A stretch of 64,000 nucleotides of DNA from Zancudomyces culisetae HAW-14-8. Taxonomy: Eukaryota; Fungi; Kickxellomycota. Numbering within the stretch: the stretch's first letter is position 1; the number at the start of each line of letters is the position of its first letter. The translations under genes were made by a program, and so were the position numbers. The stretch lies in contig JBNJNM010000011.1 in assembly GCA_052426225.1 (NCBI GenBank), positions 4,154,001 through 4,218,000 of the forward strand. Direction: 5' to 3'. Positions 2,880 through 62,910 of the stretch are shown piece by piece. The notes beneath the pieces were generated by a model. That model was not told where the DNA came from. It saw only the letters and a list, made by a program, of their open reading frames with translations, and searched no databases.

Positions 2880-2985
2880 CATCCTATTCAAGTAACAGAA
2901 TTACATCATTATAACAACAACAACACAAACAAAAATAACAACAAATATCATAACTGATAAACTACTGGTACTCAACATACCAGAA

Positions 2986-26009: not shown

Positions 26010-27429
26010 TTTCTACTTTCTATTTAGTTGTAAGCCACTCAATTATGTACTTTTTGCTCTTATTTTTTCGGTCGATCTATAGTTGATAGCTGTAATCTTT
26101 TCTAAAAATGAAATAAGCAATACTGTTCTGGCCTGCTGGTTTGTTTTTTCTTATTTTTTGCTCTTATTTACACAAGTTAAATAAACCTTGTTAGCGTTTC
26201 TCCAGTTTAATTTTTTTCACTTATCATATTAGGGTTTTGTCTCTGTTTTTGTTTTTTTAATTGGAGAATACAGCTCCAGAATTTTTACTTCAATGCAGTT
26301 AGGTGACGAAAAACTCACACCAAAGGCGAATAAATGCGTAATTACTATTGGCGAGCAGGGAATGCAAAATAAAAAATTTTTTTTTCAGACTACTCGTGGC
26401 GGAATAATTTTGCTGGATATGAATTACTTAAAAACTAAACATGCAACGAAGAATGCTATTTTGTAGAAAAGCTCGCATTGCATGTAGAAGTTTCCCGAAA
26501 TGCTTTGCTAGTCGAAGAAAAGGATTAAAAATAAAAATAAAAATAAAACGAGGAAAATTCTCAGTTGTGTAATTGCAAATGGAACGAATTGTAAACGAGA
26601 ACAGCATTGTTTAAATGAACAACACTCCAACGAAATAGACATTGGTAGGCAGAATGATCTGTTAGCTTCCTGTTATCGCGTTTGTATTTAGAAAAACTCA
26701 GAATATAAGATTAAGATTGTATGTGCTTCAAAAGAAAAAAAGGAGTTTATCTGTTTACACAAAACGGTATAGTAGAGTTGAAAATCCAAACTGAACAAGA
26801 AATTGGATTAATCTTATTTTGGATCAGGGTTGAGACAAGGTATCTTTGATGAGCGAGTTTTTTATAATAGAAAGTTTTATTTTTTAGATTTTTTTTGCTT
26901 CGAATTGTACAAAACTAGGAGTAGGTATGAAAAAAATACCAAAACTAAGTAATTGCCATCTTTTATACACTCAATCTTTGACTTTTTTTTCTTATTGTGC
27001 TAATTTCTGAGACTTTGTTAAATCATTTTAGCCCAATTCACGTGAGAAGTTCAAATTGAAAACTCGATGTAAAAAAAAATAAAGAAAAAGAAAACTGATC
27101 AAAGGTTTTTGGTTGTTATGCTTGATGCAAACACGACCAAAAAAAAAAAAAAAAATTTAAGCGCAAAAGAAAAAAATTTTTTTTTTGCGTAAACTTATAG
27201 AGTTTATTGGTAATTGGGATTTAAACTCCAAGAAATCTTGGTACATCTAAACTTTATGACTTTACATTTATAGAAATACAGAGTATATTCATATTGTTAT
27301 ACCAGAGATATACACTGGCTTTATATATCCAAGCAAATATTGTAAATAGATTTTAATTTAATAAAAAGTCTCACATATAAAACTAAAAAAGAAAAATATA
27401 AAAAGACTTTGAGCAATTCAGAAAAAACA

Positions 27430-30400
27430 ATGGATAAAATAGAAGTATATAGCCACGACAACGATGGGGATATGGAATTTGTGAATCCATTTTCCATAGA
27501 TCTAGTGCGGGCTATGGAGGTACTGCACGAAAATAGAGAACAGGCTATTGGTAAATGCAAATGCGGGAGCAGGGTAATAACTAGGGTGTTTGACCAAGTT
27601 GAGCAGTGGATAGTGCGGAACAAAGGGACGACGAGTACATATAGAAATAGAGATACAACTAGATATACAGCAGAGGGTGATGCAGCTGAAATGATGGATA
27701 TTGACAGTGAAGATGGTGGGCGGCAAGAACAAGCAAGGCAAGAACAAGCAAGGCAAGGGTTGGATTTGGTTTCCATGTTGCTGCTTGGAGAGGGGCTTGG
27801 AATACTGGAGCGGGGAGAGTGTTTTACAACCAACACGAAAACTTGTTGTAGCATCCATCAATCACGCCTAGAAACAATAAACCGCGGCGGAATAAGATAT
27901 AACGAAGATGAAGGAGAACTGACGTATTTGGTTGCACGAATATTTGGTCCGCTCTTAATAGAGCTAGTCAGTCGATGGTTGACTGAGCGGGTGGAGCGGA
28001 TGGTCAAGACAGAGTTCATAGTCGATACCGACAAAGACGTGAAATACAGATTTGTAGTTGCATATACAATTGGGCAGTTGGTAGGAGTATGGACATATTT
28101 ATCAGGACAGATCGAAAAGATAGTCGGAATAAATGATGTATGGGTAAACCAAGACTTTGAACAGAGTAACAATTATGGTGTTAAAAATGCTGGAAACGTT
28201 GAGCTAAAGTTGGCAAGGATGTTTACAATGTATCGTGTGATTGGGGCAATCAATGAGAGAATGGGCCAAACGGAGGCGGAAACCTTGCTCAATACATTCA
28301 AAATGCAGGTGTATGGCGATTTGATGGCCAAAGAAGAAATAGTGCGGTACATGGCGGTCCAGATAATTGGAAGAGTAGAAAACATGGCCTGGAGAGAGAT
28401 GCGAGAAATGGAAACGAAATGGGTGAAAAGCGAGAGTATCGAACAGAGAAACGTGGAGTTTAATGCAAAAGAGGAGCGGGAGAAAAGAGAGAAGCAAAGT
28501 AACTTGATGATCGCGCATAACGAGCGGTATAATAAGGGAGAAATAATGTCAGGAAAGGAAGAAAGGAATGGATGGATCACAGAGAGCGACATAGACGAAA
28601 AGGTGGCAAATGTTTATGGAGTTTTATTAGCAAAAAACAATTCAAAGAGAAGTTCACGTGGAAGTATACAAGAAAATGGAATAGAACACCAGGAGAGTAA
28701 GGAAAACAAGGCCAAAGAGGTGGTAGGAACCAAACATGCGAGAGAAACAATGAGAAAATTGGCTCTTGCAGTATCGCAGCACCAGGCAATGTTGTTGTAT
28801 GGACCTGGAGGCAGTGGTAAAACAACGATGATTGAGGAATTGGCAAGAATAACAGGTAATGAACTGGTGAAGATCCACTTGGGTGATCAAAGCGATGCCA
28901 AGGTACTTCTGGGAACATATATAAGCGGTGAGAAGCAAGGTGAGTTTGAGTGGCAGCAAGGAATTTTGAGCATAGGAGTACAGTCAGGAAAATGGGTTTT
29001 GGTTGAGGATATCGATAAGGCTCCAGATGAAGTCGCTTCAGTGTTAATTGGACTGTTGGAGAGCCGAGAGCTGTTTATCCCGGGGAGAGGCGAGAGAATA
29101 AAGGCACATAGTCAATTTGAGCTGTTTGGTACAGTTTCGTTATCAGTACCGACAGACTTTGGAAGAACACAAGGAAGTGGGGTTACAATGATGAGAGGAA
29201 TAGCAGGAAACAACAACTGGAACCGTGTTGAGGTGCGACAAATGAGCAGTGAAGAGATGGCAGCAGTTGTGGCATGTAGATACGGGATCTTGGGACGGTA
29301 TAGCAACGATATGGTGGAACTTTACGAACGGATAAGGCAAGAGCTTATAGAAGCAGCGGAGGGAGGTAGTTTGTATAGTAAAGGGTACGTGGGAGCACGA
29401 GATTTGTTGCGATGGTCAAAGAGAGTAGACCACTATATCAGACAATCAGCATACTGGTGTAATCATGTGGATAGAGTGTTTGATACAGCAGAGGGGAGGT
29501 ACTTGATGTTTGTGGAGGCGAGTGATGTGTTTTGTGGTTCAGAACAAGATTACGAAAAGTGGGTCGAGAAGCTGAAGCGACTGGGAGAGATTTTGGGGGT
29601 GGCAGAGCAACGTGTGGACCATTATATTGATGGCAAAGAAATAGAAGTAAACATGGATGTAAAAGCTTCAACACATAACAACAATCGTGAAGGAATGGTG
29701 ACGATAGGGAGAGCAAAGCTGAGAAGTAAACGTGATAGGCACAGTGTTCGTGGGCACACAGGCGGACGCGGTCGAAAGCCATTTGCAACAACCCGGGGTG
29801 CAAGCAAGTTGATGGAAAAGATTGCGGTAAGTGTGGAGCTTAATGAGCCAGTAATACTATGTGGTGAGACGGGTACAGGGAAAACAACAATAGTGCAGCA
29901 AGTGGCAGATATGATAGGACAGGAATTGATCGTTGTCAATCTGTCACAGCAGAGTGAGACGGGAGACTTGCTGGGAGGTTTTAAGCCGCTTGATCTGCGG
30001 GTAATGGCGGTGGTGCTGAAGGAAGAGTTTGATTGGTTGTTTGAAGAGACATTTTCGATAAAAAAGAACATGCGATATTTAGAAGCAGTTAGGCAGGCTG
30101 TGAACAAAAGCAACTGGAATCGACTAGGGAAATTGTTTTTGGAAGCGTTTAAAATGGCTCAAAAGGCGATTGCAAGCAAAAAAGAAAAGGCACGAGCACA
30201 ATTAGAAAGTCGTGAAGAAAGTAGGTCTGGAAATGGGCAACCCGAAGGAGAAGTAGAAGGAGAAGGAGAAGAAGAAAGAGGTAGTGGTGGTAGTGGTGGT
30301 GGTGGTAAGAGAATAAAAATAGCAGATACGGGTGTGCTAGATCGATTGGCTGAAAAGTGGGATGAGTTCAATGGCAAGACCAAGCGGTTTGTAAGTATTG

Positions 30401-33400
30401 AGAATGGGGGAAATGGTAAAATGATTTTTTCATATGTCGAAGGGTTGTTAGTAAAGGCGATTAAGGAAGGGAAATGGATTCTACTGGACGAAATTAACTT
30501 GGCAACTGCAGAGACACTGGAATGTCTGAATGGACTAGTAAACAGTGCAGAAGGAACACTTTTATTGTATGAACGAGGTGATATCGAACCCATTAAACGA
30601 CACGAACGGTTCAGGTTATTTGCATGTATGAATCCAGCAACCGATGTGGGAAAGAAAAACTTACCAGAGAGTTTGAGAGCGCGATTCAGTGAATTTTATG
30701 TGATGCCAATTGACAAAAATGAGGGAGATTTGAAAATGATTGTGGAGAAATATTTGGGCGATGTAAACATGAGTGGCAATACCAATAGGAGTGAGAAACC
30801 CATAAACAAGCTAGAGGTGGTTAATCGAATTGTCGAGTTTTACAGGCAGAGTCGAATGCTGGCTAAGGATTTCAAGCTTGCTGATGGAGCACAGCAGCGG
30901 CCAGACTATAGTTTGCGAACGTTGACCAGAGCGTTGAGTTTTGCCAAAAAGTACTCTAGGCTATATGGAGTAAGAGAAGCAGTGTATGAAGGGATATATA
31001 TGAGTTTTATTACGCAACTGGACCAACAGAGCAAGAACGAGTTGACAAATCTGTTAAACAAGCTGATTTTTTCAGATATCGGTGGCAATAGTAATGGAAA
31101 GAATAATGCCAGTAGTATAAGGAATGAGATGGATAAGGAGTATGTAAAAATTGGTAAATACTACATACCAAAACTCAAACAGGCAATACAACCAAGTAGT
31201 GAGGACAATGAGGAATATGTAGTTACCAAATCAGTAGCTGAAAAGATGGAAAACCTGGCAAGAGCAATCATGGCACACGACTATCCAATTCTGATCCAGG
31301 GTCCAACATCAGCAGGCAAGACATCGATGGTAGAGTATCTAGCAAAGCTAACGAACCACAAATTTGTGCGTATTAACAACCACGAGCATACAGATCTACA
31401 GGAATACATTGGTAGCTATGTTAGTGGGGAGACGTTGGAATTCAAGGAAGGGTTGTTGGTTGATGCGCTACGTAATGGGTATTGGCTGGTTCTGGACGAA
31501 TTGAATCTGGCACCAACCGAAGTGCTCGAAGCACTGAACCGGCTGTTGGACGATAATCGCGAGTTGGTAATCACAGAAACGCAACAAGTGGTGACTCCAC
31601 ATCCGGAATTTATGCTGTTTGCGACGCAGAATCCAGCAGGATTGGCCTATGGTGGACGTAAGCATTTGAGTCGTGCGTTCAAAAACCGGTTTTTGGAGTT
31701 GAATTTTGACGCGTTGCCGCCGACAGACGAGTTGGAAACTATTGTTATGCAGCGATGTGGAGTTTCTCCGGGTCAATCAAAAAAACTGATTGGAGTATAT
31801 ACCGAGTTGGTATTTCAAAAATCACAGTTATCAGTATTTCAAGCCGGTGGTGGTAATGCTGGTGGAAGCAATAGCAGTAGTAGCGGGGGAGGAGGCGGTG
31901 GTGGTGGCGGTGGTGGTAATTCTGGATTTATCACGTTACGTGATTTATTTAGATGGGCCAATCGGATTTCCAAACACGAAAGTGCGGTGAGCAATGAGTT
32001 GATTGCACAATTTGGATATATGCTTCTAGGCGAGCGAATTCGAAACAATGGAGAAAAGCAGCTAGTCAAGCAAGTACTAGAAAGAGTTTTTAAAGTAAAA
32101 ATTGATGAACAACAGCTATATTCATCCGAGCATCTCACTCGTCTATTGCAAGAATTCGGCGTGCGTGAAAGTGGTGTGATTTGGACATATGCGATGCGGA
32201 GACTTTTTATTTTGACAGCAAACAGTTTGAAATACAACGAACCAGTACTACTAGTTGGCGAGCCAGGATGTGGAAAGACGATGGTGTGCCAATTGCTGAC
32301 GAACAGCACAGTCAATGTACTCAATTGTCATCAACATACCGAGACATCTGACTTGCTAGGTGGTCTGCGACCTGTCCGAAACAGACAAAACTATATCAAT
32401 AGCGCAGTACTGTATGCCAAACAATACCTTGAACTATCTGCGAACACTGCTACTGAGGGTGGTGACGATATTTACGCAAACAAATCGTTTTGGACCAAAC
32501 TGGCACGGTTGGTCGGCGATGATGATTTCAGTAGTGCTGGTGATAACAGTACGGAGCTCGCTAGAGTGGCAAAGTTGGCAGTGGCGAATTACCAAAAATC
32601 ACGAGCGCTGTTTGAGTGGGTTGATGGTATCCTGACCAAATCGATGAAAAATGGCGAGCCATTCCTGCTAGACGAAATCTCGCTGGCTGAGGATTCAGTC
32701 CTGGAACGACTCAACAGTGTATTGGAACCCAAACGGACACTGTTGCTAGCCGAACGAGTCGACATGAATGTCACTAGTGACGATGGCGAAAGCGATGGCA
32801 ACTTTATAGTGGCAAAAAGTGGATTCCAATTCATGGCAACTATGAATCCTGGTGGAGATTACGGCAAAAAGGAACTAAGTCCAGCACTCCGCAATCGGTT
32901 TGTGGAGTATTACGTACCCAACATAATCAACAACACAGAAGACGTGACCAATATTTTGGTTGGCAACCTGAAACTAGCAAGTGCTGAGTTGGAAGAGTCG
33001 GTGGCGCGGATAGTAATTGAATTTATTGGGTGGTTTGGAGATATGTTCTTTTCACAAAGCAGTATCAATGACTCTAATATAATCACTATCAGACACTATA
33101 TTGCATGGTGCATGTTTACTAACAAGACATACGTACATTTGGGACTCCGACAGGCAGTTGTGCATGGTGGGTGTTTGGTGTTATTGGATGGGTTGGGCAC
33201 AATCGACTACATAAGTGCAGTTGCATTGAGTCTATCTGGATCATCATCATCATCAGATATTAGTGAGAGTGGCAACAAGAAACGAATTCGTGCTGGGTGT
33301 ATCAATAAATTGATTGAACTTTCAGCAGTACTTGATCGTGGTGAGAGTGCAGAATTTGACAAGACTCTGTTGTTTGTTGATGATAAAAACAGTGGTGACT

Positions 33401-33739
33401 TGAGACAGCGGATTGAATACAACAAGACAATTTCGGCAGCCGACAAGCGATACTTTGGGATATTCCCATTCTATGTTGAAATTGTAACCAAAAATGGCAT
33501 CCAATGTGATGTGGAGGCAATAATCAGAAATTATGCACTACATTCACCAACGACTTTTAATAACCTGACCAAGATACTACGTGCACTGCAAATCAACAAA
33601 CCTGTTTTGCTGGAAGGATCTCCTGGTGTTGGTAAAACGACAATTGTCGAAACTATAGCAAAACTAACCAACAAAAGCTTGGTTCGGATCAATTTGAGTG
33701 ACCAAACTGACCTGGTAGATTTGTTTGGAACTGATTTGC

Positions 33740-33776
<37 letters not shown>

Positions 33777-36700
33777 CAACAATAATGATGGTGATGATAA
33801 TAGCAGTAGTGGTGGTGGTAGTGGTGGTCGTGTGGATGAAGTCTTTGCATGGAAATCTGCACCATTCCTTACCGCAATGCTGAACGGTGACTGGGTTCTA
33901 TTAGATGAAATTAATCTGGCATCACAATCTGTTCTTGAAGGTTTGAATTCTGTATTGGATCATCGACAAGTTGTGTATATTTCCGAACTCAACAAGACAT
34001 TTAACTGTCACAGCGAATTCAAAATCTTTGCGGCCCAAAACCCAATGTCACAAGGTGGTGGCAGAAAGGGATTACCAAAGTCATTTACCAGTCGGTTTGT
34101 GAATATTTATATTGATGAATTGGAATATACTGATTATTTGACCATTCTACTCTCTTCAAGACTGGGTAATACTAATAGTAATGGTAATGATAGTGATGGT
34201 GATGGTAATAGTTATAAGCAGTACATTGATAAGCTAAAAGAAACATGCCTTAAATTCAACCAATTGGTCTGTTCTCATTTCACCATGTACGAATTCAATT
34301 TGCGTGATATAAACAGATGGTTAGACATCACTCTGACCACACACTCGACCAAATCATCATCAAATACGCTATGCGATCCTCTTGATTTCATTTCCATCTG
34401 CTACCTAAACCAAATGAACAATGTTTCCGACTACAATAAAATGAAGCTACTCATTGCGGAATTTTTCAAAATTGATCCAAATTATTTCGATAATTTACAG
34501 ACAACTTTTAATTACAAAACTGATATGTTGACAATAGGAAATGCCACCATCAATAAGGATGAATATCAAACACAACAATCCGATTCAACTACAACACTTT
34601 CTAGCGATCTTAATAGTAATGGTATTAGTAATAGTAATGGTATTAGTAATGGTAGTGGTAATATGGAGTTAATGATCAAGAAATCCGACACTCAATCACT
34701 ACAATCTCTTATCCATGCAATCAACATGAATTGGATGTCGATTGTCTACGCCACCAATGCAGCACATCTTATCAAAACCGCAGCATACCTGACACATAAC
34801 CGGCTCGAGATCTTTACAATGAACGGTTCAGTAGATACCCTGGAACTGCTCGGTAGTTATGAAAAGTTTGATGTACACAGACACATAAACAAGTTTCTGC
34901 ATGCCTTAAATGATACCATTTCGTGGCTCATCCAACACTTGCTTTTATCCAGACAATTGGATCAGCGACATGTTATTGATCACAGCGAAAAATTGACTAT
35001 GTTTTATAACTATATCTTGAAGTGTATGAGCGAAGATTCTGAATCTTCACTACCAACCTCACCCAAAAACAACGACAACGACAATAATAATAATAACAAT
35101 AGTAATAGTAATAGTAGTACACATCGAGTGTTGAATTTCAACTATATCAACCAAATATTTACATTTATTTCCTCCATCGAATATCTCGACCAACATACAA
35201 GAACACGAATTGAGGAATTATACAACCAGTATCATAATTTGATACTATTACTTGATAATAATACTCTACAAGATGGAACGGATACGAATAAGAACAAGAA
35301 TAAAGGTGGGATGTTTGAGTGGGTAGATGGAATACTCATCAACGCATTGTTAGAAGGAAATTGGTTGTTGATAGACAAGGCTAATCTATGTAACCCATCG
35401 ATTTTGGATAGATTGAATTCGTTACTAGAACCACCAAATTCCAAACTAGTAATTACAGAATCTGGTTGTTCATCTTTTAATTCCAATTCCAATTCTAATT
35501 CCAATTCCAATTCCAATTCCAATTCCAATTCCAATTCCAATTCTAATAACCAAAAATCTGGAATTGATGAAGAAATACGAACAATCATCCCACACAAGAA
35601 TTTCCGTCTTTTCTTAACCATCGATCCAACTAGTAGTAACCAGCTCAGTCGTGCAATGAAAAACCGTGGGTTGTCTATATACAACCATGGCAATCTTCAA
35701 CAATTCACTGGCAACAGTGATGGTGGTGGTATGAACATGTTTGTTGATTACTTTGACTATATCAAGATGGCTAATTCCATTGGGCTTTACAACTTTGATT
35801 ATATTGACAAGTGTATTTCTCCACTTTTACCAACTGATGTATCTGATAGACCAGTTGGAAACATGAATATCAAGGAATTGTTTGTAATGAATGCTAAACT
35901 AGCCTTGGAAAAACTACAACGTGGTTATTATTACTCTACAAATACAAATACAGATGCTGATACAGATGCAAATGCTGAAGTTGATGCTGATGCGAATACT
36001 GATAGTAATCAACTCTTGGTAGATTTTTTCAAGAACAACTCAAACTTACTTCCAATCCATAATAACGAATTCAGCAATTTGGGATTGTCAACTGCACACT
36101 TGTATTCAAGACTCCTAAGCCACTCACTAGCATTTTCTAGTAGTTACAAACAGAACATGAATAATCAGTATTTGGCTTATACTTTACCTCTGGCCATTAT
36201 TTCACATTTGAATGTCGATTTCGATACCAAATACCTTGTGGAACTGTTGAAGCTAGAAACAAGAATCCAAGGAACCAACATTGACGGCATGGATTCGATC
36301 ATCAAGTTGTTGATGTTGCTTAAGGATTCCGATCATACCGTACAAAAGAGTAATGTATTGTATGATTTAGTTGATGCTATCAGCAAATGTTATTCCACAA
36401 CTTGTCCAAAATACTCCAATTTACTTTCAATTGACAAATTTGCCAACCCGAGATTACTTTCCCGTCAACTGAAACTGCAACAATTGCAACAACCTTATCG
36501 ATTTTCCAGAGATATCAATATCAATACCAATATCAATACCAATATTGAGACTGAGACCAATACCGATTCTATTGCGGTTGGCGACAGTGTTGATGACGTA
36601 TATTACTGTCTGTTATTAAAATTATTCAATTTACATGTTTTCCACTTTCTTTTGACTCAAAGACTGTTTGTTGACGATGAGTTGGCTACTGACACAGACA

Positions 36701-39700
36701 GAAACGGAACTGAAATTGGAATCGGAATCGGAAATTTTGTGTTGAACTGCGAGTATAGAGATGGTGGTCGGTTACTTGATAGTTTCTATTCACTGTATAG
36801 TCACACAACTGTGATTTTAAATAACTTTATCTCTCGAGTTTTGGAATTTTCCACTTTAGTCTCAGACACCAATACCGATATCAATAAGCAAGACGAAATG
36901 GATATGGAAGTCGATGTTAATGTTAGTAATGAAAATGGAAATGACAGTGTTAGTCATAGTCATAGTAATAATAATACATATGCGATACCAAAATCCGAGT
37001 TGCAACATATTGTGGATTGTTGTCAGTTAATTGAACGCTTACTTGACATACTAACCACTCCAATCCTCAACACATCACCATCTAAGAACGATGGTAGCAG
37101 TAAAAAAACCATGCTAAGTCTGAACTATTTGCTGTTCACCTTTGATTCATATTTACAACACTTTAAACAACTGATCAGTAGTTTTGATCGTTTGGCTAGT
37201 ATTGCACCTCTTTCAGCATTTGTTGGCCAAGACACCTATGACTTTATAGTTCTTCAATTGGTTCCACTTATTTATGGCCCAAACCATCGCTGCTACTTTT
37301 CACTCCACCATACTGCGACTGAACTTCACAAACGGGTATCACAACCTATTCTTGATGGATCTGAATGTAAACATGAACTGTTTGATATCCAACATTTGGA
37401 AGCGTCTCTTATGTATAAACTAACACCAATCATAGATACCAATTCTCTGTTGTCGCTTGCCAGCAATGTCAACAATAGTATCACCAATAGTGATGAAATC
37501 GGTGTGAACGAGATTTCGCGATTTGTTGATGGTAGCAGTGAAAAGATAAGCCGCTTGTTGAAGTATATTGGGGATAACAAGCAACAAATTGATAGCAGAT
37601 TGGTGGATTCCATCTCTACAATTTATTCACTGTACTTGAAGCATCAGTTGGATTCCAAACCCAATACTAGTACCAATGCTACTGGTGGTAGCGATGGTGA
37701 GGATCACTTGTTGGGAACGTTGATTACTGCTATCCTTGGTGATTTGAGTAAATACCTAAATACGCTAGCCACTTCCTCGACCCTCCCACAACTGGAACAG
37801 CAACAACAACAACAACAACAACAACAGCAACAGCAACAAGTTGGTAATGAAGCTGATGCTGTAGATTTGCGAATCTTTGATTTGGTGGAATACAAGTGTC
37901 TGAATAGACAGCTAATTACCCAGCTTTTTGTTGAATCTAACTTTGGCAAACCAACCACAAGCTCAAACAATACAAATCAGTCAACGACACTGATCAACAG
38001 ACATTTGAAACATAATCTATATTCATTTGGATATTTGAAGAATCTTGTATTAAACAACCTACTAACAATTGAAAATAGCAATAGCAACAGTAATAGTAAT
38101 AGTAATATCGAAAATGGTATCAGTGATCGAAATGAAAACAAACAAGCCATCTTGTTGAAACTGTTGCATGAAAAGCTGTATTACCATTACTTGACACTAT
38201 TTACTTCTTCCACATTGGCAGCTGATAGTAAGAGTGACGTTTCTATTGAACGACAACTTATTCATACACTGACCACTACACTTGTTGGAATTACAGAATT
38301 GGCAAATATTTCCAATTTTGGATACTACTACTCGGAACTTTCACCTACCATTCACAAAAAGATTTCGGGCCTGTTATCGATCCACACTAGCGATTCGAAT
38401 GCTGTTGATGTAGGAGACTGTCTGGAATACCTAAACCTGCTGTACTTGCTGTATGTGTCGGTATACCAACTCGATACCACCACAACTCCTCCAGCTGGAT
38501 CAAAATTGGGTGGTGAAATTGACCAATTGTTTGTTGACCTGATTGTGTTGCTTGGCAAGCCGAGCGAATACTATAATACACAACTTGTTGCTGCTTTACA
38601 TCGACTTTCTGCACACTTTGCAACACTTGTGACGACTGAGGATGATAGTAATAATAGTAATAATAATATCATGCAATCTGGGTTATTGTTGACAGTTGGG
38701 GCGATTACCAACATCATTTTTAACGAGTCGCTTGGGCTGTTTATTATGTATGTTTCGACCACCGATAACCACAGCGTTGCAGACCGGAAGGTGTGTTTCT
38801 TGAAGGCCAAATTACTGCTTACATATACAATTTTGTCTCTAGTGGTTCCAAAGACACATCCAGTAAACCACAACTACCGTGTGTTGTATAACATTAGTAA
38901 TGCGGTTGGAAAATCAAGGTTCTATGATGCAAATTACCAAGCCAACTACTTGGTTGGATATCTCACAACCACGTCTTCAAACACTCTTCCATCATCTAGT
39001 GTAGCTACCCATTATGGTAATAGCTCTGGTAATGGTAATGGTAGTGGTAGTGGCGTTGGATTTGAGGATCAAAGTACCAAGTACTACCGCTCTAAATATT
39101 TACAATGCCTTGATTCAATCAACGAGTACACTTCTTCCTTCAAACATGTTTTGTCTTCAGGCACACCACAATCAGCACCATCTACTGCTGATGAATCAGA
39201 GTACATAGGCCACTGGCAGGCTATAACCAATATCCTCACCAACATCATTCCACTACAAACCGTGCGACAGCTTGAGGTGTTGACAGTCGACCAGCTAACG
39301 CTTCTAAACAACAAATTAAGGTTCACCATCAACAAACACTTTGTTCAGAATGATCAGTCTAGTGTTGATGGTATTCAGGTCGTGTGGACAACTCTACTAT
39401 TGTCCATGTATTCGGATATGATGGGATGTCTGGACCACTTTAAATCATCAGTACATTACAACAGACAGTTTGGAAAAGTTGTCACAAATGATGCTCATCC
39501 ACCTCATCCAACCACTGTTGTAAAGACGCTCTGTACTTTCCCAATTAATTTCCATTCAGCTGACTATAAATTCGCCACTCTGTTCACAAGTAAAGATACC
39601 TTACAATTTATTAAGCAGCTAGCATTGGCAAAACATGGGCAATCCGATGTGGATGCAGATGCCTATTCAAGTATTGGTAGTACCATGTACATTTCAAACA

Positions 39701-42700
39701 TTCCAGCTACAGTCGTTGTCAAAAACAGCACCACTTTTCGTTTCGATGGTTCTGAATCGGCTTTGTATCAACGCTACCTATTGCTTTTGCTTTTGCGACA
39801 CACAGCATTGACAATATCAAATGGCCGCCACAGTAAAAATGCTGATGCTAGTACTGAATTGCTAGATACTCTATTTGGTGAATACTACAAAGTTGGAAAT
39901 CTTATTGAAGATTATACCTACCACAACAAGATTGAACAGGCCAATCTGTACAAAAACAGGCCTAACAGTGCTAATCAATCTGAACATGGTCAAACCGGAA
40001 ACGGTGACGAACTTGATGAAGAAGAGAAGGATAAGCAAACGTGGTTCCCAACCTTTTCAGAACTCGAAAATATCAACATCGATGGTCTGAACGATAACCC
40101 ATCTTCTTATACAGATTCAAACCAAGCGGAGAAGGCCAGAGTTACTGTAAATCCAGTTCTTGATGAAACCATTCTAAACAAATTTATTACCTGTTTCAAG
40201 TATTTGGCAAATTATTCCGCAAGTAAAGCCGCATTACCATCAGAACTGAGTCACAACGATGATAGTGATAGTGATAGCGATAGCGAGGATGTTTTGGGAC
40301 TGTTTTTAATGATGTTGTCTAGCCAGTTCAATTTATTGAACAGTCAATTGGGCAACTTGCTTTTGGATACTTCAGTATTGAACAATTTGGGATCATCGAC
40401 TGGTTCGTTATCAACATTACTTTCCGCATTTAGAAACAATTTCTTGCTGAATAGTAACATTAATCATTTATTGAAAAAGTTCCAATCAACCGAATCTAAA
40501 TCCAAGAAAAATTCAAAGACAAAATCAAAATCAAAGACAAAGACAATTTCGGCATCAAAGTCCAAACAAACAAGTAGCAACTCCACGCTACATTCACTCT
40601 TATATTCCAGCAACAACGATATCCTGGCTACAGATTTTGAAATATACGATTTCTATCATGACCCTAACGTTCCCCAAGCCATGTTATTGCAAGATATTTT
40701 GGGTCCACTGAAAGCCAAAATCCAAAAGCTGTTATCAAACAGCCAAGATATAGATCAGGATCAGGATCAGGATATGGATGATTCCGCAATTTTCCTCAGT
40801 TCATTGGAAAGTGCATTCTTGGAGCTGCTCGTAGTTATTGACAGGATCTTGGTTGGTTTTAAAATCTTTGATACAAGTGTGTACAAATATCTTGTATTCC
40901 TCGAACAACTTCATGTAAAGTTAGACGAGTTCCAAAAATACTACTTTTCATCATCAGCAACGTCCAAAAAACACCAAGATGATGATGATCAAGAAGAAAA
41001 AGATAAAGATGGTAAGGATGGTAAGGATGGTAAGGATGGTAAGGATGGTAAGGATGGTAAGGATGGTAAGGATGGTAAGGATGGTAAGGATAGTTGGCTG
41101 AGAGGATTTGGTACTGAATTGAAGGCAATTACCGACCTAATAATCAGTTGGAGACAACTTGAACTCAACAATTGGCCTCGGCTTATGGACCTCGAATTCT
41201 ACAGACTGTCACGCAAAAACTCGAATGTCTACTGGTTCTACTTGTACAAAATCTTTGCAAACTCCAACCTCGGCCAAGACAAAATGGAATTTGTCAGGCT
41301 TATTGATCAATTTCTCTCCACCAGTCCAATCTGTGAATTTGAACATCGGTTGGATCTATTACAAGCGTTTATCAATTACTCTTCTACTTTTACACAAATA
41401 AGCACAAGCTCAAACTCAAACTCCAGCTCTAATGCTGTTGGTATTGCGAACATCGTTTCTTACTATTCAACATTTGTTCCAGCTATCCGTACCCACATTG
41501 ATAATCTACACAGTTCAGTTTCCACAAAACTCAAGCAATACGTCAAAATCTCTAGCTGGTCTGATGTTAATCCCATTGCTCTCCGCCAATCTGCCAAGAA
41601 ATCCCACTCCTTGCTAGCCAAATGTCTGCGTGAATTCAGGGACGGCCTGATGCTGCACTCCAACAACGTCATTGAAACGTACTTGCACTCACTTTCCAGA
41701 CTTTCAAACATCGCCAGCAACGGTATACGTATACAGTCGACATTTGAGTTTGGTGCCAGCAGCGGTTTGGTTGTTGATTCGTTCTTGATAGCCAAAAATC
41801 AATCCACTGAAATGGTACTACATAATAACTCGTTGCTACCGCTAATGGGGTTGGATTCTCATGCGCAATATGATCAGCTGGTTAATTTCGACACATGGCA
41901 ATCCAAACGGTTCTCAAAGATTGCCAACTTGCACACATTAATCAACGCACCATATTTTGCCCAATCTCTCAACAACCTCGCCGACTTTTTCATCTCGGAC
42001 ATTTATGAACAAGTGAAATACTATCAAACACTTACCTACCAACCACAAGATACACAACCATCCGATACCAAGAAACCTGATAACCATAAGAGCAAATTCT
42101 GGTCGTTGAATAAACAACTGGCTAACAAGTTTTTGGTTTCAACTTGTAAAACCCTTCGGTCAGATCACGGTTTGAAAAAGACCACAAATGTGTTGGTAAA
42201 ATTCAACCTTGTCAATACTTTGCTTGATCACCAACAACGTCACTTATCCTCTGCTCTCTTTGGATCAACTTGTAACAGCTCCCACACCGACAGTTGTAAT
42301 AACAGTAACAATAACAATAACGATAACAATAAAAATAATAGTAGTCAAGATAGCAGTACTTGTTCTTGTTGCTTATCGCCTGATCAATCAACCAAGCTAT
42401 TCAACATCCTCTCACTATTCAACCAAACCATAAACAAATTCTTCAAATCATCCTCAAATGCCCCCACAACCAATCCAAACGACGGCATCCTCTCTCCAAA
42501 CCACCAACTCTCTCTTCTTGGACTGTCCACCAACTATATTCAAACCTGTTTAGAACTCGTTAAACATTCTACAGAAATTATTGACGCTATAAACCTACAC
42601 AAACTGCTGATCCAGTACCTTGGCTCGACTCTTTGCTCTCCAAGTGCCGGGAACAAACAACACAATGTAACTTCGGGGCAAACTTCTGATCTAGAGCACT

Positions 42701-45700
42701 TTTTAGAGTACAAATCATTTGTAAACTCCTTTTTGGTCATTTGTGCCCAGCTTGCTACCTCCTCTCAGTTATCCAGTAACATTTCTGTAAATGGTGTCGA
42801 AAACGATTCTACAAATTCACAGAATGCAATTCTTGAATCGATAATCAACATTCAAGAATTCAAGCGTCTAAATTCCAAATTCGCTAGTTTCTATTCCCAA
42901 TACTTGAAGTATACACCTCTCTTTAAGACACCCACCACTACAGGTATAGATTCCAGTTCTAGCTCTATCTCTAGCTCTAGCTTTAGCTCTATAGCTACAG
43001 TTGTTGGTTTTAATGGAGGTGAATATAGGGAATTGATGCAATCTACTGAATCCCTAGTTAATCAGGCTATTGAAAACATCAACACTTATAATAAACAACA
43101 AGGTCATCGAAACACCAGTGGTGGAAATGATATCAAGCTCGACTTGAATACATTGCTGTCAGCACTACTATCATTCCATTCTGCCAACACCAACACCAAC
43201 AGCGCTGTTCTCATTAATCCAGTCAATGGTACTGATGCGACTGTTCAGGATATCGACAAGAATCCAAACACTACATCTACATCTACGTCCGCAGATGCAG
43301 ATGCAGATGCAGATGCAGATAAGGACTCCGATTTGCACCAGTTACTAAACCAGCTATGTGTGGATATCACGCTTTCCATCCAGAACTTTATAGTTTTCAA
43401 TACTGAGTTTGTGAATACCAAGAAATCCCTTGATTCTCGAGATAGCCTCTCCGAAGAAAACGAACATCAATTAAAAGACCTCGGAGTCTCTGACCTGCTC
43501 AAGTATATATCAACCCTTCATCGCACACTGCTATCTCCAGAACTTCTCCACAGCACCATAATTCGATCAACAACAAACATGTTATCCATATCGACTAGTA
43601 CTCAAGGTATACTGACACCTCTGCTTACACTCTACCACGAGTTCCTGACTCGAATCCTTCCAATCGTCTCGGATATCCAGGCCGTAGTGATAGATACTTG
43701 CCACACCCTCGTAACTTCTACATGCTCAATCGTTAGTAATGGTTTGTTGACTAACTATCAACATCCATCAGCTGATGATTCTCAGGCAAAAGAGGGTGAA
43801 GAGGACGATAATTCCAATTCTAACAGTAAAAACAATGGTCCTCAAAGCTTTAATTGTGATGATCCTGATCAAGCTGATAACGAAAACATTGATTATAACG
43901 AGCTAAATAATGTGAGCAACGAAATCGAGGATCTTAGCCAAGTCAACAATACCAACAAGAACAATGATGACAACAAGAACAACCCGGACTACGGAAACAA
44001 CGATGATGACAAGGATAATGCTCTTGATATGGATAATGATGGTGAACTAGGTGATGCTGACTTTGACATGTCAGATAATGATGCTGACAGTGGTGATGAT
44101 AGCGATGATGAAGAAAACGGTTTTGATGAGCAGCTGGGCAAAGTCGATAACAACGACCCTACCGCGATTGACGAGAAATTGTGGAATGATGATGAAAACA
44201 AGGACGATGGGGATAATAGCAATGAAAATAACAAAGCTGAACAATCTATTGATAACAACAACATCATCAACGACTCTATGGATTCGGAAATGGTTGCCAA
44301 GGATGAACCAGAGAACGAAGCTGATAAACAGAATGCCAATGATTCTTCCAATCCACCAGATTTTAACAACAACAACAATAATAATAACAATGATGATGAT
44401 GACGTAGACAACATCAACGATAACAGCAACAACCCCGATGATATTGATTTGATGAACAAGGACCAACAGCAACCACAGCTGGAATTGCCTGAAGATTTTA
44501 CATTGGATGATCTGGACAACGACCAAAACCAAGATGAAGACACCAACGAACCACAGGACATGCTTGACGACACTGAAAAGTACAATGAAGATGAATACAT
44601 GGACGTTGATAATTCTACAAACCCACAGGAACAAGAAGCACAAAACCAAGAAGATGTGGCAATTGAGGATGTAGAAAACACCCAGAATGAGGATATCATT
44701 AGTAACACAAATGATACTTTGGCCCCGACAGATGAACAAGATAACGAAAATGGGAATGAGGATCAAGGTGAAGGTGAAGATGAGGATGCAGGTATGGATC
44801 AAGACGAGGAGCCAGAAGAACCAGAGCCCGAATACAACCCGTCTACTGCATTTGCTGACAACAATGACAATCAGCTGGAAAATCCTCAAACCGACGAAAA
44901 CAAATTCAATGACAATACATTTGGATTCGACAATCCTAACCCGATCGCCAACCAAAAGAACGAACTCCAGAGACTACAGCCAGAGGATTCTGATGTCCAA
45001 GATTCCAAACAGGAGTCATCTACCAGTGATACTACTACCAATAGTAACAACAATTACAATAATAACTTGAATAAAAATAATAGTAGCAACAACAAAACAA
45101 CTAAAAATATCAGCAAACCCGACCTAAATCCTGATGCTGATGACAATCAGGAAACACAAGAACAACAGCAGGACAGCGAGAAAAAGAGTGAAATGGAAAA
45201 TGATGACACCGAGGATGGTGATGTCAATAACCAATTCAACAAATTCGATACCTCTTCGCTCCAGGAAATCTTTGAAGATTGGAAATTGCGACTCAAGAGT
45301 CAGCTTCAACAACCTGAATCCACATCTGACGATGAAAATGAAGATGAAAATGATGGTGGTAATGAAGAAATGGACGATGTTGACAATTCCGCTTACCAAA
45401 AGATTCCTCAAGACAAAGATCAAGACGTAACCAACACCAAGGACTACACCATTGATGACGATACTGATGCAAATAATAACGATTCGTCAACCAAACAGCA
45501 GGACGCTGAAAAGATCAGTGATTTGCTAAAAGCCTCGGCTGAAAAGGAAAACACTGGCAATCAGCACGAATCTGGGCCTGCCGAGTCTGCCACTTCCAAT
45601 GGTGATGAGCCTGATAACCAGGAACACGAATTGAAAAATGAGCTGTATACAGAGTTTTTGAATTCGCACATGTCTACTGGTACTCAACCGTCTTCCACCA

Positions 45701-46770
45701 ATCCAGAACCTGTCACCAAAACTAAACTCGATACCACCTCCCTATCTGATACTGAGTCTACTGATACAAACAAGGACAAGAGTAAAGGCAACTCCAAAAA
45801 CAAAGACAAAAATTCCAATATCCCCACCATCAAGACTGACAAACCTACAGACACAACTTCAAACTCACATTCTGAACCCCTTCCCGCCAGCTATTCAGCC
45901 ATCTGGAAATCGTACACTGATGCTACCTTCCAGCAATCTCTCGTCCTCAGTCAACAGCTCAAAACCATCTTTCTCCCTACCGTAAACAACTCGCTCAAGG
46001 GCGACTATAAATCCGGCAAGCGTATCAACATGAAGCGCGTTATTGGCTTTATTGCTTCCGATTATAAGCGCGACAAGATCTGGCTCAAACGCACCAAACC
46101 TGATCTGCGCAACTACAGTGTTGTTGTCGCCATTGACGACTCCAAATCTATGTTATCACTCAACAATAATGTGATTGATCTAACACTGAGGTCCTTGGCC
46201 TTATTGGCCAACTCTCTGACTGGCCCCAATACCAACACTCTCTTTTCATCTTCCTCTTCTTCCAACAATAGTAGCAGTGGTTTGACTGTGCTTACCTTTG
46301 GTACTAATGTTACAGATATCTGCAAATTCTCTACAAACTTTACCCACCAAGATGGAGCAGCCCTGCTACGTACCCTGACGTTCAACCAGAACACTACCGA
46401 CCTAATTCTTCTAATCAACCATGTCATATCTCTCTTCTCCACCGATCCCTCGCCCGATCTATGGAAGCTTTTCATCATCATCTCAGATGGTATCTGCCAA
46501 AACCACCCACACATAGCTACACTTGTCCGCTTTGCCGCCACCCAATTCAAAATCCTTATTGTCTTTGTTGTCATTGACAACCAACATAATTCGATTTCCA
46601 ACATCAAATCGGTAGTATTTGATCAGCCTTCCGGTGGTACCGGCGGACTGCGCATTTCCAGATACTTGGATACTTTCCCATTTAACCATTATCTCATTAT
46701 TAATGATATCTACTCATTACCCGATGCGTTGGCTAATACCCTGCGCCAGTTCTTTGCTTCATTTAGCTAA
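27430..46770 (+). CDS. MDN1: Midasin (Rea1/Mdn1) dynein-related AAA+ ATPase for 60S biogenesis; intronless, 6446 aa from the first ATG
   Basis: Tandem AAA modules (GPGGSGKT, GETGTGKT, GPTSAGKT, GEPGCGKT, GSPGVGKT; WxLLDEINLA), a long helical linker, a D/E/N-rich tail, GDYKSGKRINMKRVIGFIASDYKRDKIWLKR and a MIDAS domain (AIDDSKSM, IISDG). Confidence 0.98.
35479..35544 (+). repeat. (AATTCC)11 encoding poly-(NS) inside MDN1
   Basis: Eleven hexamer units, two of them the AATTCT variant. Confidence 0.95.
41008..41088 (+). repeat. (GATGGTAAG)9 encoding (DGK)9 in the MDN1 linker
   Basis: Nine perfect 9-bp units. Confidence 0.97.
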
Positions 46771-59931: not shown

Positions 59932-62910
59932 ATGATAGCAGATATACAAAGAACAAACGAGTCGGCGGGAACTTGGCTTGAAGAGCTGGAAAGTGAAGTT
60001 GCGATGATAGTTCCGCTCTCGCGCAAACATGAGGAGATAAAAACAAGTGGTAGCGGCAGTGGGGGAGGAGTGGGAGCAAAAGATAACAAGTCGGAGTACC
60101 TGATCAGGAAATTGAAGCGAAAGTTGGGGCATAAGGAGATGGATGCAGTGGTGATATCAGTATCAGGCTCGAGATCGGGATCGGGATCGGGATTAGGGCA
60201 AAACAAAACGCCAGGGATAAGAGCAAGTAGTGAGGAAGAGGTAGCAAGTGATGCTTTTGGAGGAGGAGATGCTATGGAGGACCGTGATTCTTCACTTGGA
60301 ATGGGGGGAGGAAGTGTGCTACCATGGCGACTCAGCAGCAACATTGGTTCAGATCTGATGGAGTTGGGGAATATGGAATTAGTGATAGACAGGTGGAGCG
60401 AACTAGGCAGCCCTACAAAACTGATCATTATGTACTGTTTGATTGGACTTGGAGAGAAAAAGCTGGGTACCGTAAAAAACCTTGTAGAGAAAATTGCTCA
60501 ATTGGCAGAATCGGATAGGAAGAACTCAGAATGGGTTAGCATTACAGGAAAGCTGGTAGGAAGAGTAGGAGTGGAAGGCACTATGAGAGACATTGCAGCT
60601 TTGAAGGAGTTGATGAGCACAGACAGCCTCGATGGAGACGAGGTTCTAATTGATGATCTCAATAAATCTATAGACAAGATAGTAAATATAGTTCACAGTA
60701 ACATATTCAGATTAATTCCCAAAGAATGGAGGTACTTGAGTGAGGAGATCAGGCGCAGCATAGCGCCAAACATGACTGTAGGAAGCTACTCAGGAGAGCC
60801 TGTACTTGAAATGTCGGCATCAGCAAACACACTCGAGGTGGATAATTGGGGGCTTAACATGTACACGAATCCTAAATTTGCAGTTAACCATAGCAAGCGA
60901 CTGGAAAAGTTGCTGAAGGCTGCAGATGATGCCATAGCGACGGAACAGCAAAGACACCAACACCCAGCAGGTGCACGAATAGTCGGTGGTGTAATGGGTG
61001 GCAGGCCGGCATTATCAGCCGCAACAGGAGTGGCAGGGATGAAGAGACCTGGGGCAGGGCTTTACTCTGGAGCCGGGCGAAGGCATCCTGGTATGGGAAT
61101 GGGAATGGGAATCAGTGCTGCACCGGGACCAATTACGATTCCTTCTGATGGCACATCGTCCAATTTATCAAATACGATACCTACACCCACCAATGCTGCT
61201 CCTAACGCTGCTCAGAGCCTGATCTTTGGCGATGCACGAGGCAGAAGAGTCAGCGATGACTCACTCAGATCCTCACCCAGCGACTCTTCTTCATCACGCC
61301 TCTTCCTCAACCCCACTCGTAACCCAGTTTTTGGTGCCAACCCCATTACAACCACTCAACCCCGAAACAAGCTGGGAATGATTCCTCCTAAAAAGAAAAA
61401 ACCCATCCAGACAATCGGCGTGAGCACAAGCTCGCAATTGCCCGATTCTTCAAGCACGTGGAGAAGGCCTTCATTAATAAGTGCCACCTCACCTTCCCCT
61501 GTACCTCTTTCTGGCTCTTCTCCTGTAGCCAGCCGATCTGATCCATTCGTGATTCCAGATGATCGAAATGACAGTGCTGCCCCTCTGCATTCCAACCACA
61601 GCCTGCATTCAGGCGTTTTTGGTGGCAGTGGTGCGACTCCATACGGAGGCTTGCAAAGAAAGTCACGTATCCAATTTGTCGATATGCATGACAGTGTTGC
61701 TCTTATGCAGGAGCGTGAAAACACGATGAAGGAGATCAAAGAAAAAGTTCAAGAAGAACGTGAAGCAAAGAAACTGAAACGCAAACTTGCGATTGAAGCC
61801 AAAAAATCAACCACCGCTCAAAATAAACGCAAAAAGAAGAGAAGAGCTTCTCGGGACAGCGACGATGATGATATTGAAGAAGACGATGATAACTATGATG
61901 ATCAGGAGAACGAAGATGCCGACAATCAAGCCGAAAGTGATACTGATGAATCTCGTGAACGGAAACGGCAGAAAGGGCGTGACAATCGCAGCGCATCTAC
62001 CGGTCCTGTGGATGTCGACGTCTCCTCGAGTCCCTCTGAACCTCTCGCAAGTACAGCCAGCAACTCTACAAACGCTAACCAGAACGATAACCAAGATCAA
62101 GATGATCAAGATGATTCCGATGTTGAGCTGGCCAAAATAGTTAAACTACAACCCAAATCAAAGACACAATCTACTGTCGCAACTGATTCAGATCCATCTC
62201 TTTTGGATACTGCCAATGCTACTAGCAATGGTAAGGACAAAGAAAAGGCTAAGGGAAAAAGAGGAAGAAAGAAGAAGGACACTACTACTACTACTACTAC
62301 TACTACAGCTGCTCACAATCAGCATGACGAAGATGCACATACTGCTGAAGGAAATACCATTCCAGCTCATTCAAACGAACCGATAATTCCTCAAAAACGC
62401 AATTTGCGATCCAGAACTTTAAGAGCCCGTAACGAACAAGAACAGCTTGATAAACTTCTCTTTGACAGCAATCCTGCCGCAAACGTTGAAACTAACGCCA
62501 AGATATCTCTTGATACTCCTGACACTACAAACACGTCAACAAATACTAGCACTGGTATCGATGCTTCTATCATGGATAAATACAAAGACATGGTTGACCC
62601 GAATACCATCCGCCAGATCTTTGATGGTGCAAACGTTGTTTCTGATTTCGACAAATTCAAAATTCTTGATTTTTTGTCTGGTAAGCTAAACAGACCAGCC
62701 TCTTCACAACAGTCCACCAGTGGTTCTAATGATGCAGACAGCGGACCAGTCGACATTGTCTTGAAGAAATCTGAATCTCCCGATTCCGAATCTTCTAACA
62801 AGATCATCATTGAACAAGTTATTTTCCACATGAATGTTGGTACTGGTGAGTGGAAAATGATGAAGAAGCGTGTAAAGAAAAAGAAACCTGCCGCTTCAAA
62901 TCCTTCATAA
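59932..62910 (+). CDS. NELFA: Negative elongation factor A (NELF-A)-like protein
   Basis: 992 aa with three collinear blocks resembling metazoan NELF-A: N-terminal (WSELGSPTKL...IAQLAESD...WV...LIPKEWRYL), central (RKSRIQFVDM) and C-terminal (IFDGANVVSDFDKFKILDFLSG...VIFHMNVGTGEWKMMKK). Confidence 0.8.
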   Translation: MIADIQRTNESAGTWLEELESEVAMIVPLSRKHEEIKTSGSGSGGGVGAKDNKSEYLIRKLKRKLGHKEMDAVVISVSGSRSGSGSGLGQNKTPGIRASSEEEVASDAFGGGDAMEDRDSSLGMGGGSVLPWRLSSNIGSDLMELGNMELVIDRWSELGSPTKLIIMYCLIGLGEKKLGTVKNLVEKIAQLAESDRKNSEWVSITGKLVGRVGVEGTMRDIAALKELMSTDSLDGDEVLIDDLNKSIDKIVNIVHSNIFRLIPKEWRYLSEEIRRSIAPNMTVGSYSGEPVLEMSASANTLEVDNWGLNMYTNPKFAVNHSKRLEKLLKAADDAIATEQQRHQHPAGARIVGGVMGGRPALSAATGVAGMKRPGAGLYSGAGRRHPGMGMGMGISAAPGPITIPSDGTSSNLSNTIPTPTNAAPNAAQSLIFGDARGRRVSDDSLRSSPSDSSSSRLFLNPTRNPVFGANPITTTQPRNKLGMIPPKKKKPIQTIGVSTSSQLPDSSSTWRRPSLISATSPSPVPLSGSSPVASRSDPFVIPDDRNDSAAPLHSNHSLHSGVFGGSGATPYGGLQRKSRIQFVDMHDSVALMQERENTMKEIKEKVQEEREAKKLKRKLAIEAKKSTTAQNKRKKKRRASRDSDDDDIEEDDDNYDDQENEDADNQAESDTDESRERKRQKGRDNRSASTGPVDVDVSSSPSEPLASTASNSTNANQNDNQDQDDQDDSDVELAKIVKLQPKSKTQSTVATDSDPSLLDTANATSNGKDKEKAKGKRGRKKKDTTTTTTTTTAAHNQHDEDAHTAEGNTIPAHSNEPIIPQKRNLRSRTLRARNEQEQLDKLLFDSNPAANVETNAKISLDTPDTTNTSTNTSTGIDASIMDKYKDMVDPNTIRQIFDGANVVSDFDKFKILDFLSGKLNRPASSQQSTSGSNDADSGPVDIVLKKSESPDSESSNKIIIEQVIFHMNVGTGEWKMMKKRVKKKKPAASNPS

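Follow-up and report, generated by a model that had tools for sequence, protein, structure and literature searches.

A divergent NELF-A ortholog in the fungus Zancudomyces culisetae, with NELF-B, NELF-C/D and Integrator genes in the same genome

Zancudomyces culisetae lives in the guts of dipterans, and one long reading frame in the 64,000-nucleotide stretch of its DNA that we analysed (the window) raises the question of whether this fungus keeps NELF-A and, if it does, what NELF might be doing there. NELF is the complex that causes animal RNA polymerase II (Pol II) to pause after the promoter. A 2025 review terms both NELF and Integrator metazoan-specific (PMC12667398), and a compact-gene fungus keeping NELF-A, NELF-B and NELF-C/D plus Integrator is a counter-example. 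A 2016 study described homologs of NELF-A and NELF-C from Chlorella and Dictyostelium (PMC4940160), and NELF-B and NELF-C/D have been dated to the last eukaryotic ancestor, with loss in the yeasts (Chivu et al., bioRxiv 10.1101/2023.02.19.529146). Pausing machinery that is gone from the yeasts can be put to the test in early-branching fungi.

Gene model and conserved regions

The features of the locus, with the evidence on which each was assigned, are as follows.

59932..62910, + strand: intronless NELF-A ortholog, 992 aa (ORF; public counterpart AX774_g1421; profile to human NELF-A, E 1.2e-13)
59959..60009, + strand: helix at the N-terminus carrying W15, corresponding to helix 1 of NELF-A (mouse W12) (aligned Trp; model)
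60010..60321, + strand: insertion of ~105 aa that separates helix 1 from the W24 equivalent (Trp-Trp spacing)
60322..60936, + strand: N-terminal block, aa 131-335, putative NELF-C-binding domain (profile A2, Atlas, Foldseek)
60937..61641, + strand: low-complexity linker 1, aa 336-570 (composition; poorly conserved)
61654..61707, + strand: tentacle-like motif with core RIQFVDM, candidate counterpart of NELF-A residues 253-266 (conservation, pattern, order)
61708..61857, + strand: charged, probably helical segment with basic clusters at its end that may be NLS-like in function (alignment)
61858..62586, + strand: acidic/low-complexity linker 2 (composition; unalignable)
62587..62886, + strand: NELF-A C-terminal microdomain (PDB match, profile A3, model, Atlas)

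The gene is a single open reading frame of 992 codons running from the ATG at 59932 to the TAA at 62910 with zero introns. Its product is nearly identical to a Z. culisetae hypothetical protein of 923 aa, AX774_g1421 (913 of 921 aligned residues, 99%), which begins at Met71 of the window protein and so is without the first ~70 residues. The upstream ATG is probably the right one, and the public model probably ~70 aa too short, because the Trp of helix 1 (W15) is kept in five orthologs: the equivalent residue lies at position 13-16 in three Smittium proteins and in those of Furculomyces and Geosiphon, and a low-confidence model places a helix at aa 12-26. When the 27.1 Mb genome (25 contigs) was searched with the fungal profile only this one site was matched, making NELF-A single-copy, and the gene sits on a 5.2 Mb contig amid fungal genes. 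The genes of the window are compact and many are without introns. Open reading frames on the opposite strand across the NELF-A gene were dismissed as shadows.

The first-pass annotation had quoted three conserved-looking blocks separated by low-complexity spacers, and all three are found in the translation where it had placed them. Block 1 extends from W132 (60325) to Y268 (60735), with conservation continuing to about aa 330, block 2 is RIQFVDM at aa 579-585 (61666-61686), and block 3 runs from F897 (62620) to about 62886. Conservation was scored as the mean BLOSUM value in a 15-aa window over an alignment with the orthologs of Smittium, Mycoemilia, Spiromyces and Geosiphon. The means are 1.6-2.6 at aa 121-210, 2.4 at aa 256 and 1.9-2.4 at aa 571-615, and are highest in the C-terminal domain (up to 3.8 at aa 961), while the spacers are unalignable at about -2 to +0.8. 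The blocks therefore exceed chance, as they are the conservation peaks of the alignment. There is also a fourth, N-terminal block holding W15 (mean 1.3-1.6 over aa 1-30), and the full set of peaks is aa 1-30, 121-210, 241-285, 301-330, 571-630 and 886-975.

W15 and W132 are 117 aa apart in the window protein, compared with 95-99 in Smittium, 9 in Geosiphon and 12 in mouse; more generally, helix 1 of the Kickxellomycotina proteins is followed, ahead of the W24 equivalent, by an insertion of ~85-150 aa that Geosiphon is without. The first half of the insertion is partly conserved among the Harpellales. Linker 1 is 50% G/S/T/P/N and contains six SP/TP sites. The charged segment comes after the tentacle-like motif as in animals but is longer, the basic cluster of mouse NELF-A lying 10 residues past the motif.

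Homology to NELF-A and earlier reports

Direct searches did not identify this protein. A Pfam scan of the whole sequence and of the three blocks separately returned zero NELF matches, PF23553 (NELF-A_N) run against the genome returned zero matches, and phmmer against PDB gave noise only for the whole protein and for the N-domain alone; it is because of these failures that the gene stayed unannotated. The C-terminal 101 aa alone did rank human NELF-A first among 177,635 PDB sequences (E 0.07). Word-index searches for homologs returned only the window protein itself or a Geosiphon protein, whereas an exhaustive search with the C-domain found seven relatives (Smittium mucronatum, S. angustum/Furculomyces, S. 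simulii, Mycoemilia, Spiromyces, Geosiphon and one metagenome protein), the named matches being all fungal. The Geosiphon ortholog carries PF23553, a model matched by three of the seven aligned orthologs (best E 3.7e-9), with the window protein on its own below threshold.

Profiles built from the fungal ortholog sequences only were decisive. The N-terminal profile (A2, six fungal sequences) has human NELF-A (5l3x_A) as its first match in PDB at E 9.4e-6, the C-terminal profile (A3) also places human NELF-A first at E 3.6e-9, and the full-length fungal profile does so at E 1.2e-13, matching the two domains in the right sequence. Within profile A2, W132, W201, P263 and Y268 are invariant; W201 aligns with human W89 in the profile-PDB alignment, and W132 was placed on W24 by eye via the Geosiphon/Basidiobolus and mouse sequences. 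Both W24 and W89 of NELF-A insert into NELF-C (PMC4940160). Language-model and fold comparisons agree, with ESM Atlas returning NELF-A_N clusters as the neighbours of aa 125-345 (0.90, 0.89 and 0.86), and with the top five Foldseek rows for a poor model of aa 1-329 (pLDDT 43) all being NELF-A (probability 0.99-1.00, E 0.02-0.11). The homology proposed in the first-pass annotation is thus upheld for the N- and C-terminal domains by profiles, the PF23553 bridge through orthologs, Atlas neighbours and folds, while for the middle block it is plausible with a score that is not significant.

Identity to the window protein declines with distance among the fungi, from 33-34% in the Harpellales (Smittium) to 22-24% in the Kickxellales (Mycoemilia 24%) and 20% in Geosiphon (Glomeromycotina), which argues for vertical descent and against contamination by, or transfer from, the host. 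Such an origin, or a chance resemblance, might be suspected from the missing direct Pfam match and the dipteran-gut habitat, but two independent domain profiles place NELF-A first, the named C-domain matches are all fungal, and the 5.2 Mb contig provides fungal neighbours. We consider this explanation refuted by the domain profiles and the all-fungal named relatives, and give it a negligible probability. It is confirmed that 59932-62910 is a real and very divergent NELF-A gene, unannotated until now. It is almost certainly the only NELF-A ortholog that this Harpellales (Zoopagomycota) fungus has, and was inherited vertically.

The closest known system is human NELF-A (WHSC2; PDB 5L3X, 6GML and 8UHA; Pfam PF23553), for which we used the domain bounds 6-188 (N-terminal NELF-C-binding domain) and 431-528 (C-terminal microdomain). 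Both proteins present helix 1, the NELF-C-binding domain, a disordered linker and the C-terminal microdomain in the same order, the tentacle-like motif of the window protein standing at the place of the human tentacle segment, and they share the W24/W89 equivalents, a PxExxYL-type motif and the core residues of the C-domain. The window protein differs in being much longer (992 aa vs 528 aa), in the ~105-aa insertion past helix 1, in a linker of ~240 aa ahead of the tentacle-like motif (~65 in mammals), in the longer charged helix after it, in having Asp in place of R453, and in scoring below the Pfam threshold.

It should be noted that the novelty implied by the first-pass annotation was overstated. 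The supplements of Chivu et al. contain three fungal NELF-A-like proteins, from Rhizophagus (XP_025172955.1), Lobosporangium (XP_021882417.1) and Basidiobolus (ORY06555.1), and their candidate files hold 14 (NELF-B) and 16 (NELF-C/D) fungal entries that include the Z. culisetae genes found here. Our gene is absent from their NELF-A files although Z. culisetae was searched, fungi come up a single time in their main text, in a different connection, and those authors draw no functional conclusion on the NELF-A-like proteins. These share with the window protein the three blocks, a motif of the form RIQ/KIQ-hydrophobic-D with a charged helix after it, and an R453 column that is never Arg, but are shorter and without the N-terminal insertion. 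Our literature search on NELF or Integrator in early-diverging fungi found no study, subscription papers being mostly outside its coverage. What we describe is a new member of the NELF family, newly recognised in Z. culisetae, where fungal homologs had been catalogued without discussion or test; novelty is reduced by that preprint supplement and by unicellular NELF having been known since 2016. The gene completes the set for Z. culisetae, for which the published survey had only B and C/D, and its likely start is corrected.

The tentacle-like motif and the C-terminal microdomain

In humans, NELF-A residues 253-266 have been modelled on the RPB2 protrusion (PMC12359043, citing Su and Vos 2024), and by counting on the mouse sequence these residues are the GVKLLDI segment. 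A motif related to RIQFVDM is kept in all seven aligned fungal proteins, with its Asp absent in two Smittium proteins, and the three less divergent fungal sequences from the Chivu et al. supplement read RIQLLDL, RIQILDI and KIQMLDI where mouse has VKLLDI. The motif pattern, which was written after the sequences had been seen, occurs 0 times in 38,352 background amino acids and in 0.14% of shuffles. A profile of the tentacle block searched against PDB did not include NELF-A among its matches at E<=10; its top match, a MIF protein at E 0.014, was judged to be chance. From its pattern, conservation and order, and from the basic cluster coming after it, we think it likely that the middle block is the tentacle segment of NELF-A.

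This bears on a proposal of Chivu et al. (bioRxiv 2023.02.19.529146), under which the Pol II-binding region was a gain made by NELF-A at about the time animals arose, since the tentacle match, if right, would count against such a gain having occurred only then. The criterion used by those authors for a full NELF-A, the PROSITE HDAg profile PS51838, was found only in animals and Capsaspora, and because of this the window protein probably does not match it either. That restriction, the motif's lack of a significant score against human NELF-A and the large insertions in the window protein could all be taken to mean that the protein is a NELF-A-like AC/B scaffold with a non-transcriptional role, in which Pol II binding decayed or never existed and the middle block is an unrelated fungal motif; a cytoplasmic, pausing-independent role has indeed been reported for mammalian NELF-B (PMC10591015). 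However, the motif stands in the same order between two proven domains with a basic cluster after it as in animals, and the intermediate readings RIQLLDL, RIQILDI and KIQMLDI approach the VKLLDI of mouse, so that we regard a scaffold of this kind as very improbable.

The C-terminal microdomain was modelled with confidence (pLDDT 81), giving two helices together with a sheet of three strands. In Atlas, the one structural match to exceed TM 0.5 is the model of an arthropod NELF-A (TM 0.60); an Atlas feature search gave nothing usable, and a wide fold search nothing meaningful (best Z 4.0). The human NELF-A C-domain appears to be absent from the models in solved structures. Human NELF-A 431-528 binds the PHD finger of INTS12 through R453, and R453A mimics the loss of NELF (2026 preprint, 10.64898/2026.06.30.735463). 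In an alignment anchored on F445 = F897, the R453 column is occupied by D905 (62644-62646) in the window protein, by D, N, D, D, Y, S, P and V across the eight aligned fungal sequences, and by G, P and E in the three from the Chivu et al. supplement; it is never Arg in these fungi, and the choanoflagellate C-domains shown are likewise without it. We note that R453 marks a function shown in human and does not define the NELF-A family. No INTS12-like PHD finger was seen among 26 PHD-like matches in the genome, as judged by visual comparison with an INTS12 signature. We infer from these alignments that the C-domain is old and that the Arg-PHD contact may be an animal addition or be made differently, and that the domain would have an older partner; what the domain binds without R453 is testable in fungi.

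NELF and Integrator partners and possible function

The first-pass annotation had suggested that other NELF subunits might be present, and the genome search bears this out for NELF-B and NELF-C/D, both by Pfam and by best PDB matches. NELF-B is a 657-aa frame on contig C12 (COBRA1 E 2.5e-12, over the Pfam cut-off; best PDB match NELF-B, E 3.4e-7). NELF-C/D lies on contig C11, 330 kb from the window, as two frames split by a probable intron whose exons were searched individually (TH1 E 4.7e-15, over the Pfam cut-off; best PDB match NELF-C/D, E 3.1e-10). Integrator is represented by INTS2 (E 1.9e-36), INTS3 (E 2.9e-80), INTS6 (E 3.2e-30) and INTS11, which scores 1e-212 against Integrator subunit 11 compared with 1e-102 against CPSF73, has an intact HFHLDHC motif, and is at a locus separate from the CPSF73-like and CPSF100-like loci (both assigned by eye). 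An INTS9 search of the genome returned only the CPSF73-, CPSF100- and INTS11-like loci, and neither the IntS11_C model nor HEXIM found a match there, in searches run without a positive control. Taken at the level of sequence, these results demonstrate that NELF-A, NELF-B and NELF-C/D are encoded in the genome, together with four or more subunits of Integrator.

By analogy with human structures, aa 131-335 of NELF-A would bind NELF-C, which in turn would bind NELF-B; the NELF core would dock onto Pol II-Spt4/5 with the tentacle motif gripping the RPB2 protrusion, and NELF-B would supply the INTS6 contact for Integrator. Such an ancestral three-subunit NELF would probably be without NELF-E, which is found only in metazoans (Chivu et al.), and HEXIM, and would be without the animal R453-INTS12 PHD contact. 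It is likely that NELF-A, NELF-B and NELF-C form a complex that sits on Pol II. Pausing indices are higher in species with core NELF than in those without, unicellular species with core NELF having intermediate values and NELF-E and HEXIM accompanying the strongest pausing (Chivu et al.). A weaker or more diffuse pause, as in other NELF-bearing unicellular eukaryotes, would for that reason be likelier than the sharp metazoan one. We therefore favour, as the probable best explanation overall, a NELF-A ortholog acting in an ancestral three-subunit NELF with a modest pause, and put the existence of a measurable NELF-dependent promoter-proximal pause at somewhat better than even.

In the main rival account the NELF complex is real, but what it is chiefly retained for is adaptor work, either linking Integrator to snRNA and other non-coding genes for 3' end formation and early termination or serving cap-binding/3' processing, while mRNA promoters would show hardly any pausing or none. 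The retention of INTS2, INTS3, INTS6 and INTS11 alongside NELF fits this, as do the suggestion that the indispensable role of NELF may be its link to Integrator (Blears et al.) and the compact, often intronless genes of the window, given that pausing has been linked with long genes in a review (PMC12667398). Against it, the tentacle-like motif, a segment that binds Pol II in animals, is kept across the Zoopagomycota and Mucoromycota, and among unicellular species the presence of core NELF is correlated with pausing (Chivu et al.); we consider this mainly adaptor role unlikely. The two roles are nonetheless compatible and not exclusive, and whether the ancient job of NELF was pausing or Integrator recruitment is testable in culturable haploid-type microbes.

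Returning to the modest-pause reading, we would more tentatively, and at rather less than even probability, extend it to the early-diverging fungi (Zoopagomycota and Mucoromycota) at large, which may run a working promoter-proximal NELF-Integrator checkpoint with three NELF subunits and the tentacle present and no NELF-E, HEXIM or R453-INTS12 contact. If this were true, both the tentacle and the C-terminal microdomain must be older than animals, the C-domain would have had an older partner, and the yeast state would be a derived loss. The NELF of Dictyostelium, Chlorella, Capsaspora, ichthyosporeans and choanoflagellates is comparable, with NELF-A, NELF-B and NELF-C/D present and NELF-E unreported (PMC4940160; Chivu et al.). 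PRO-seq has been published for some NELF-bearing unicellular eukaryotes and we found none for any NELF-bearing fungus; what fungi offer over those other holders of NELF is that its loss in yeasts permits a comparison within one kingdom.

Gene models of NELF subunits

The public model of the NELF-A gene (AX774_g1421) takes a methionine at 60142 as its start and leaves out window 59932–60141, which holds the conserved first helix, and comparison with orthologs supports the upstream ATG at 59932 as the predicted start. NELF-B and its convergent neighbour end about 50 bases apart, and by its look we take the latter, which has RRM and PWI-like domains, to be RBM25/Snu71-like:

L005 (excised stretch of the same genome), 195–2908: stretch of NELF-B and its convergent neighbour

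At L006, positions 4764–4872 (minus strand), a short GT-AG intron probably splits the NELF-C/D gene. In the form given by the supplementary sequence files of Chivu et al. (bioRxiv 2023.02.19.529146), the public model of this gene, AX774_g4376, holds a garbled C-terminal part only.

Integrator subunits

This fungal genome (G000) also encodes subunits of Integrator, a complex for which we found no publication on fungi within the searchable literature:

C11:892333–893817 (L007): INTS2
C8:832313–833547 (L009): INTS3
C21:731114–731524 (L045): INTS6
C21:2843864–2844889 (L013): INTS11

In the search for an INTS12-like PHD finger, a short RING-finger ORF came up in four or more near-identical versions on separate contigs (L034, L037, L039 and L040); these are possibly repeat-borne.

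Other genes and repeats of the window

The first two features below were recognised by reading translations, and the retrotransposon is apparently intact:

1248–6732: non-LTR (LINE-type) retrotransposon; zinc knuckle in ORF1, endonuclease and reverse transcriptase motifs in ORF2
8094–10241: frame resembling ferric reductase/NADPH oxidase; contains a long insertion of low-complexity sequence
27409–46770: intronless frame of 6,453 aa

The last of these looks like midasin/Rea1, the yeast protein being some 1,500 aa shorter. It carries numerous low-complexity insertions, a tendency to expansion that it shares with the NELF-A of the window.
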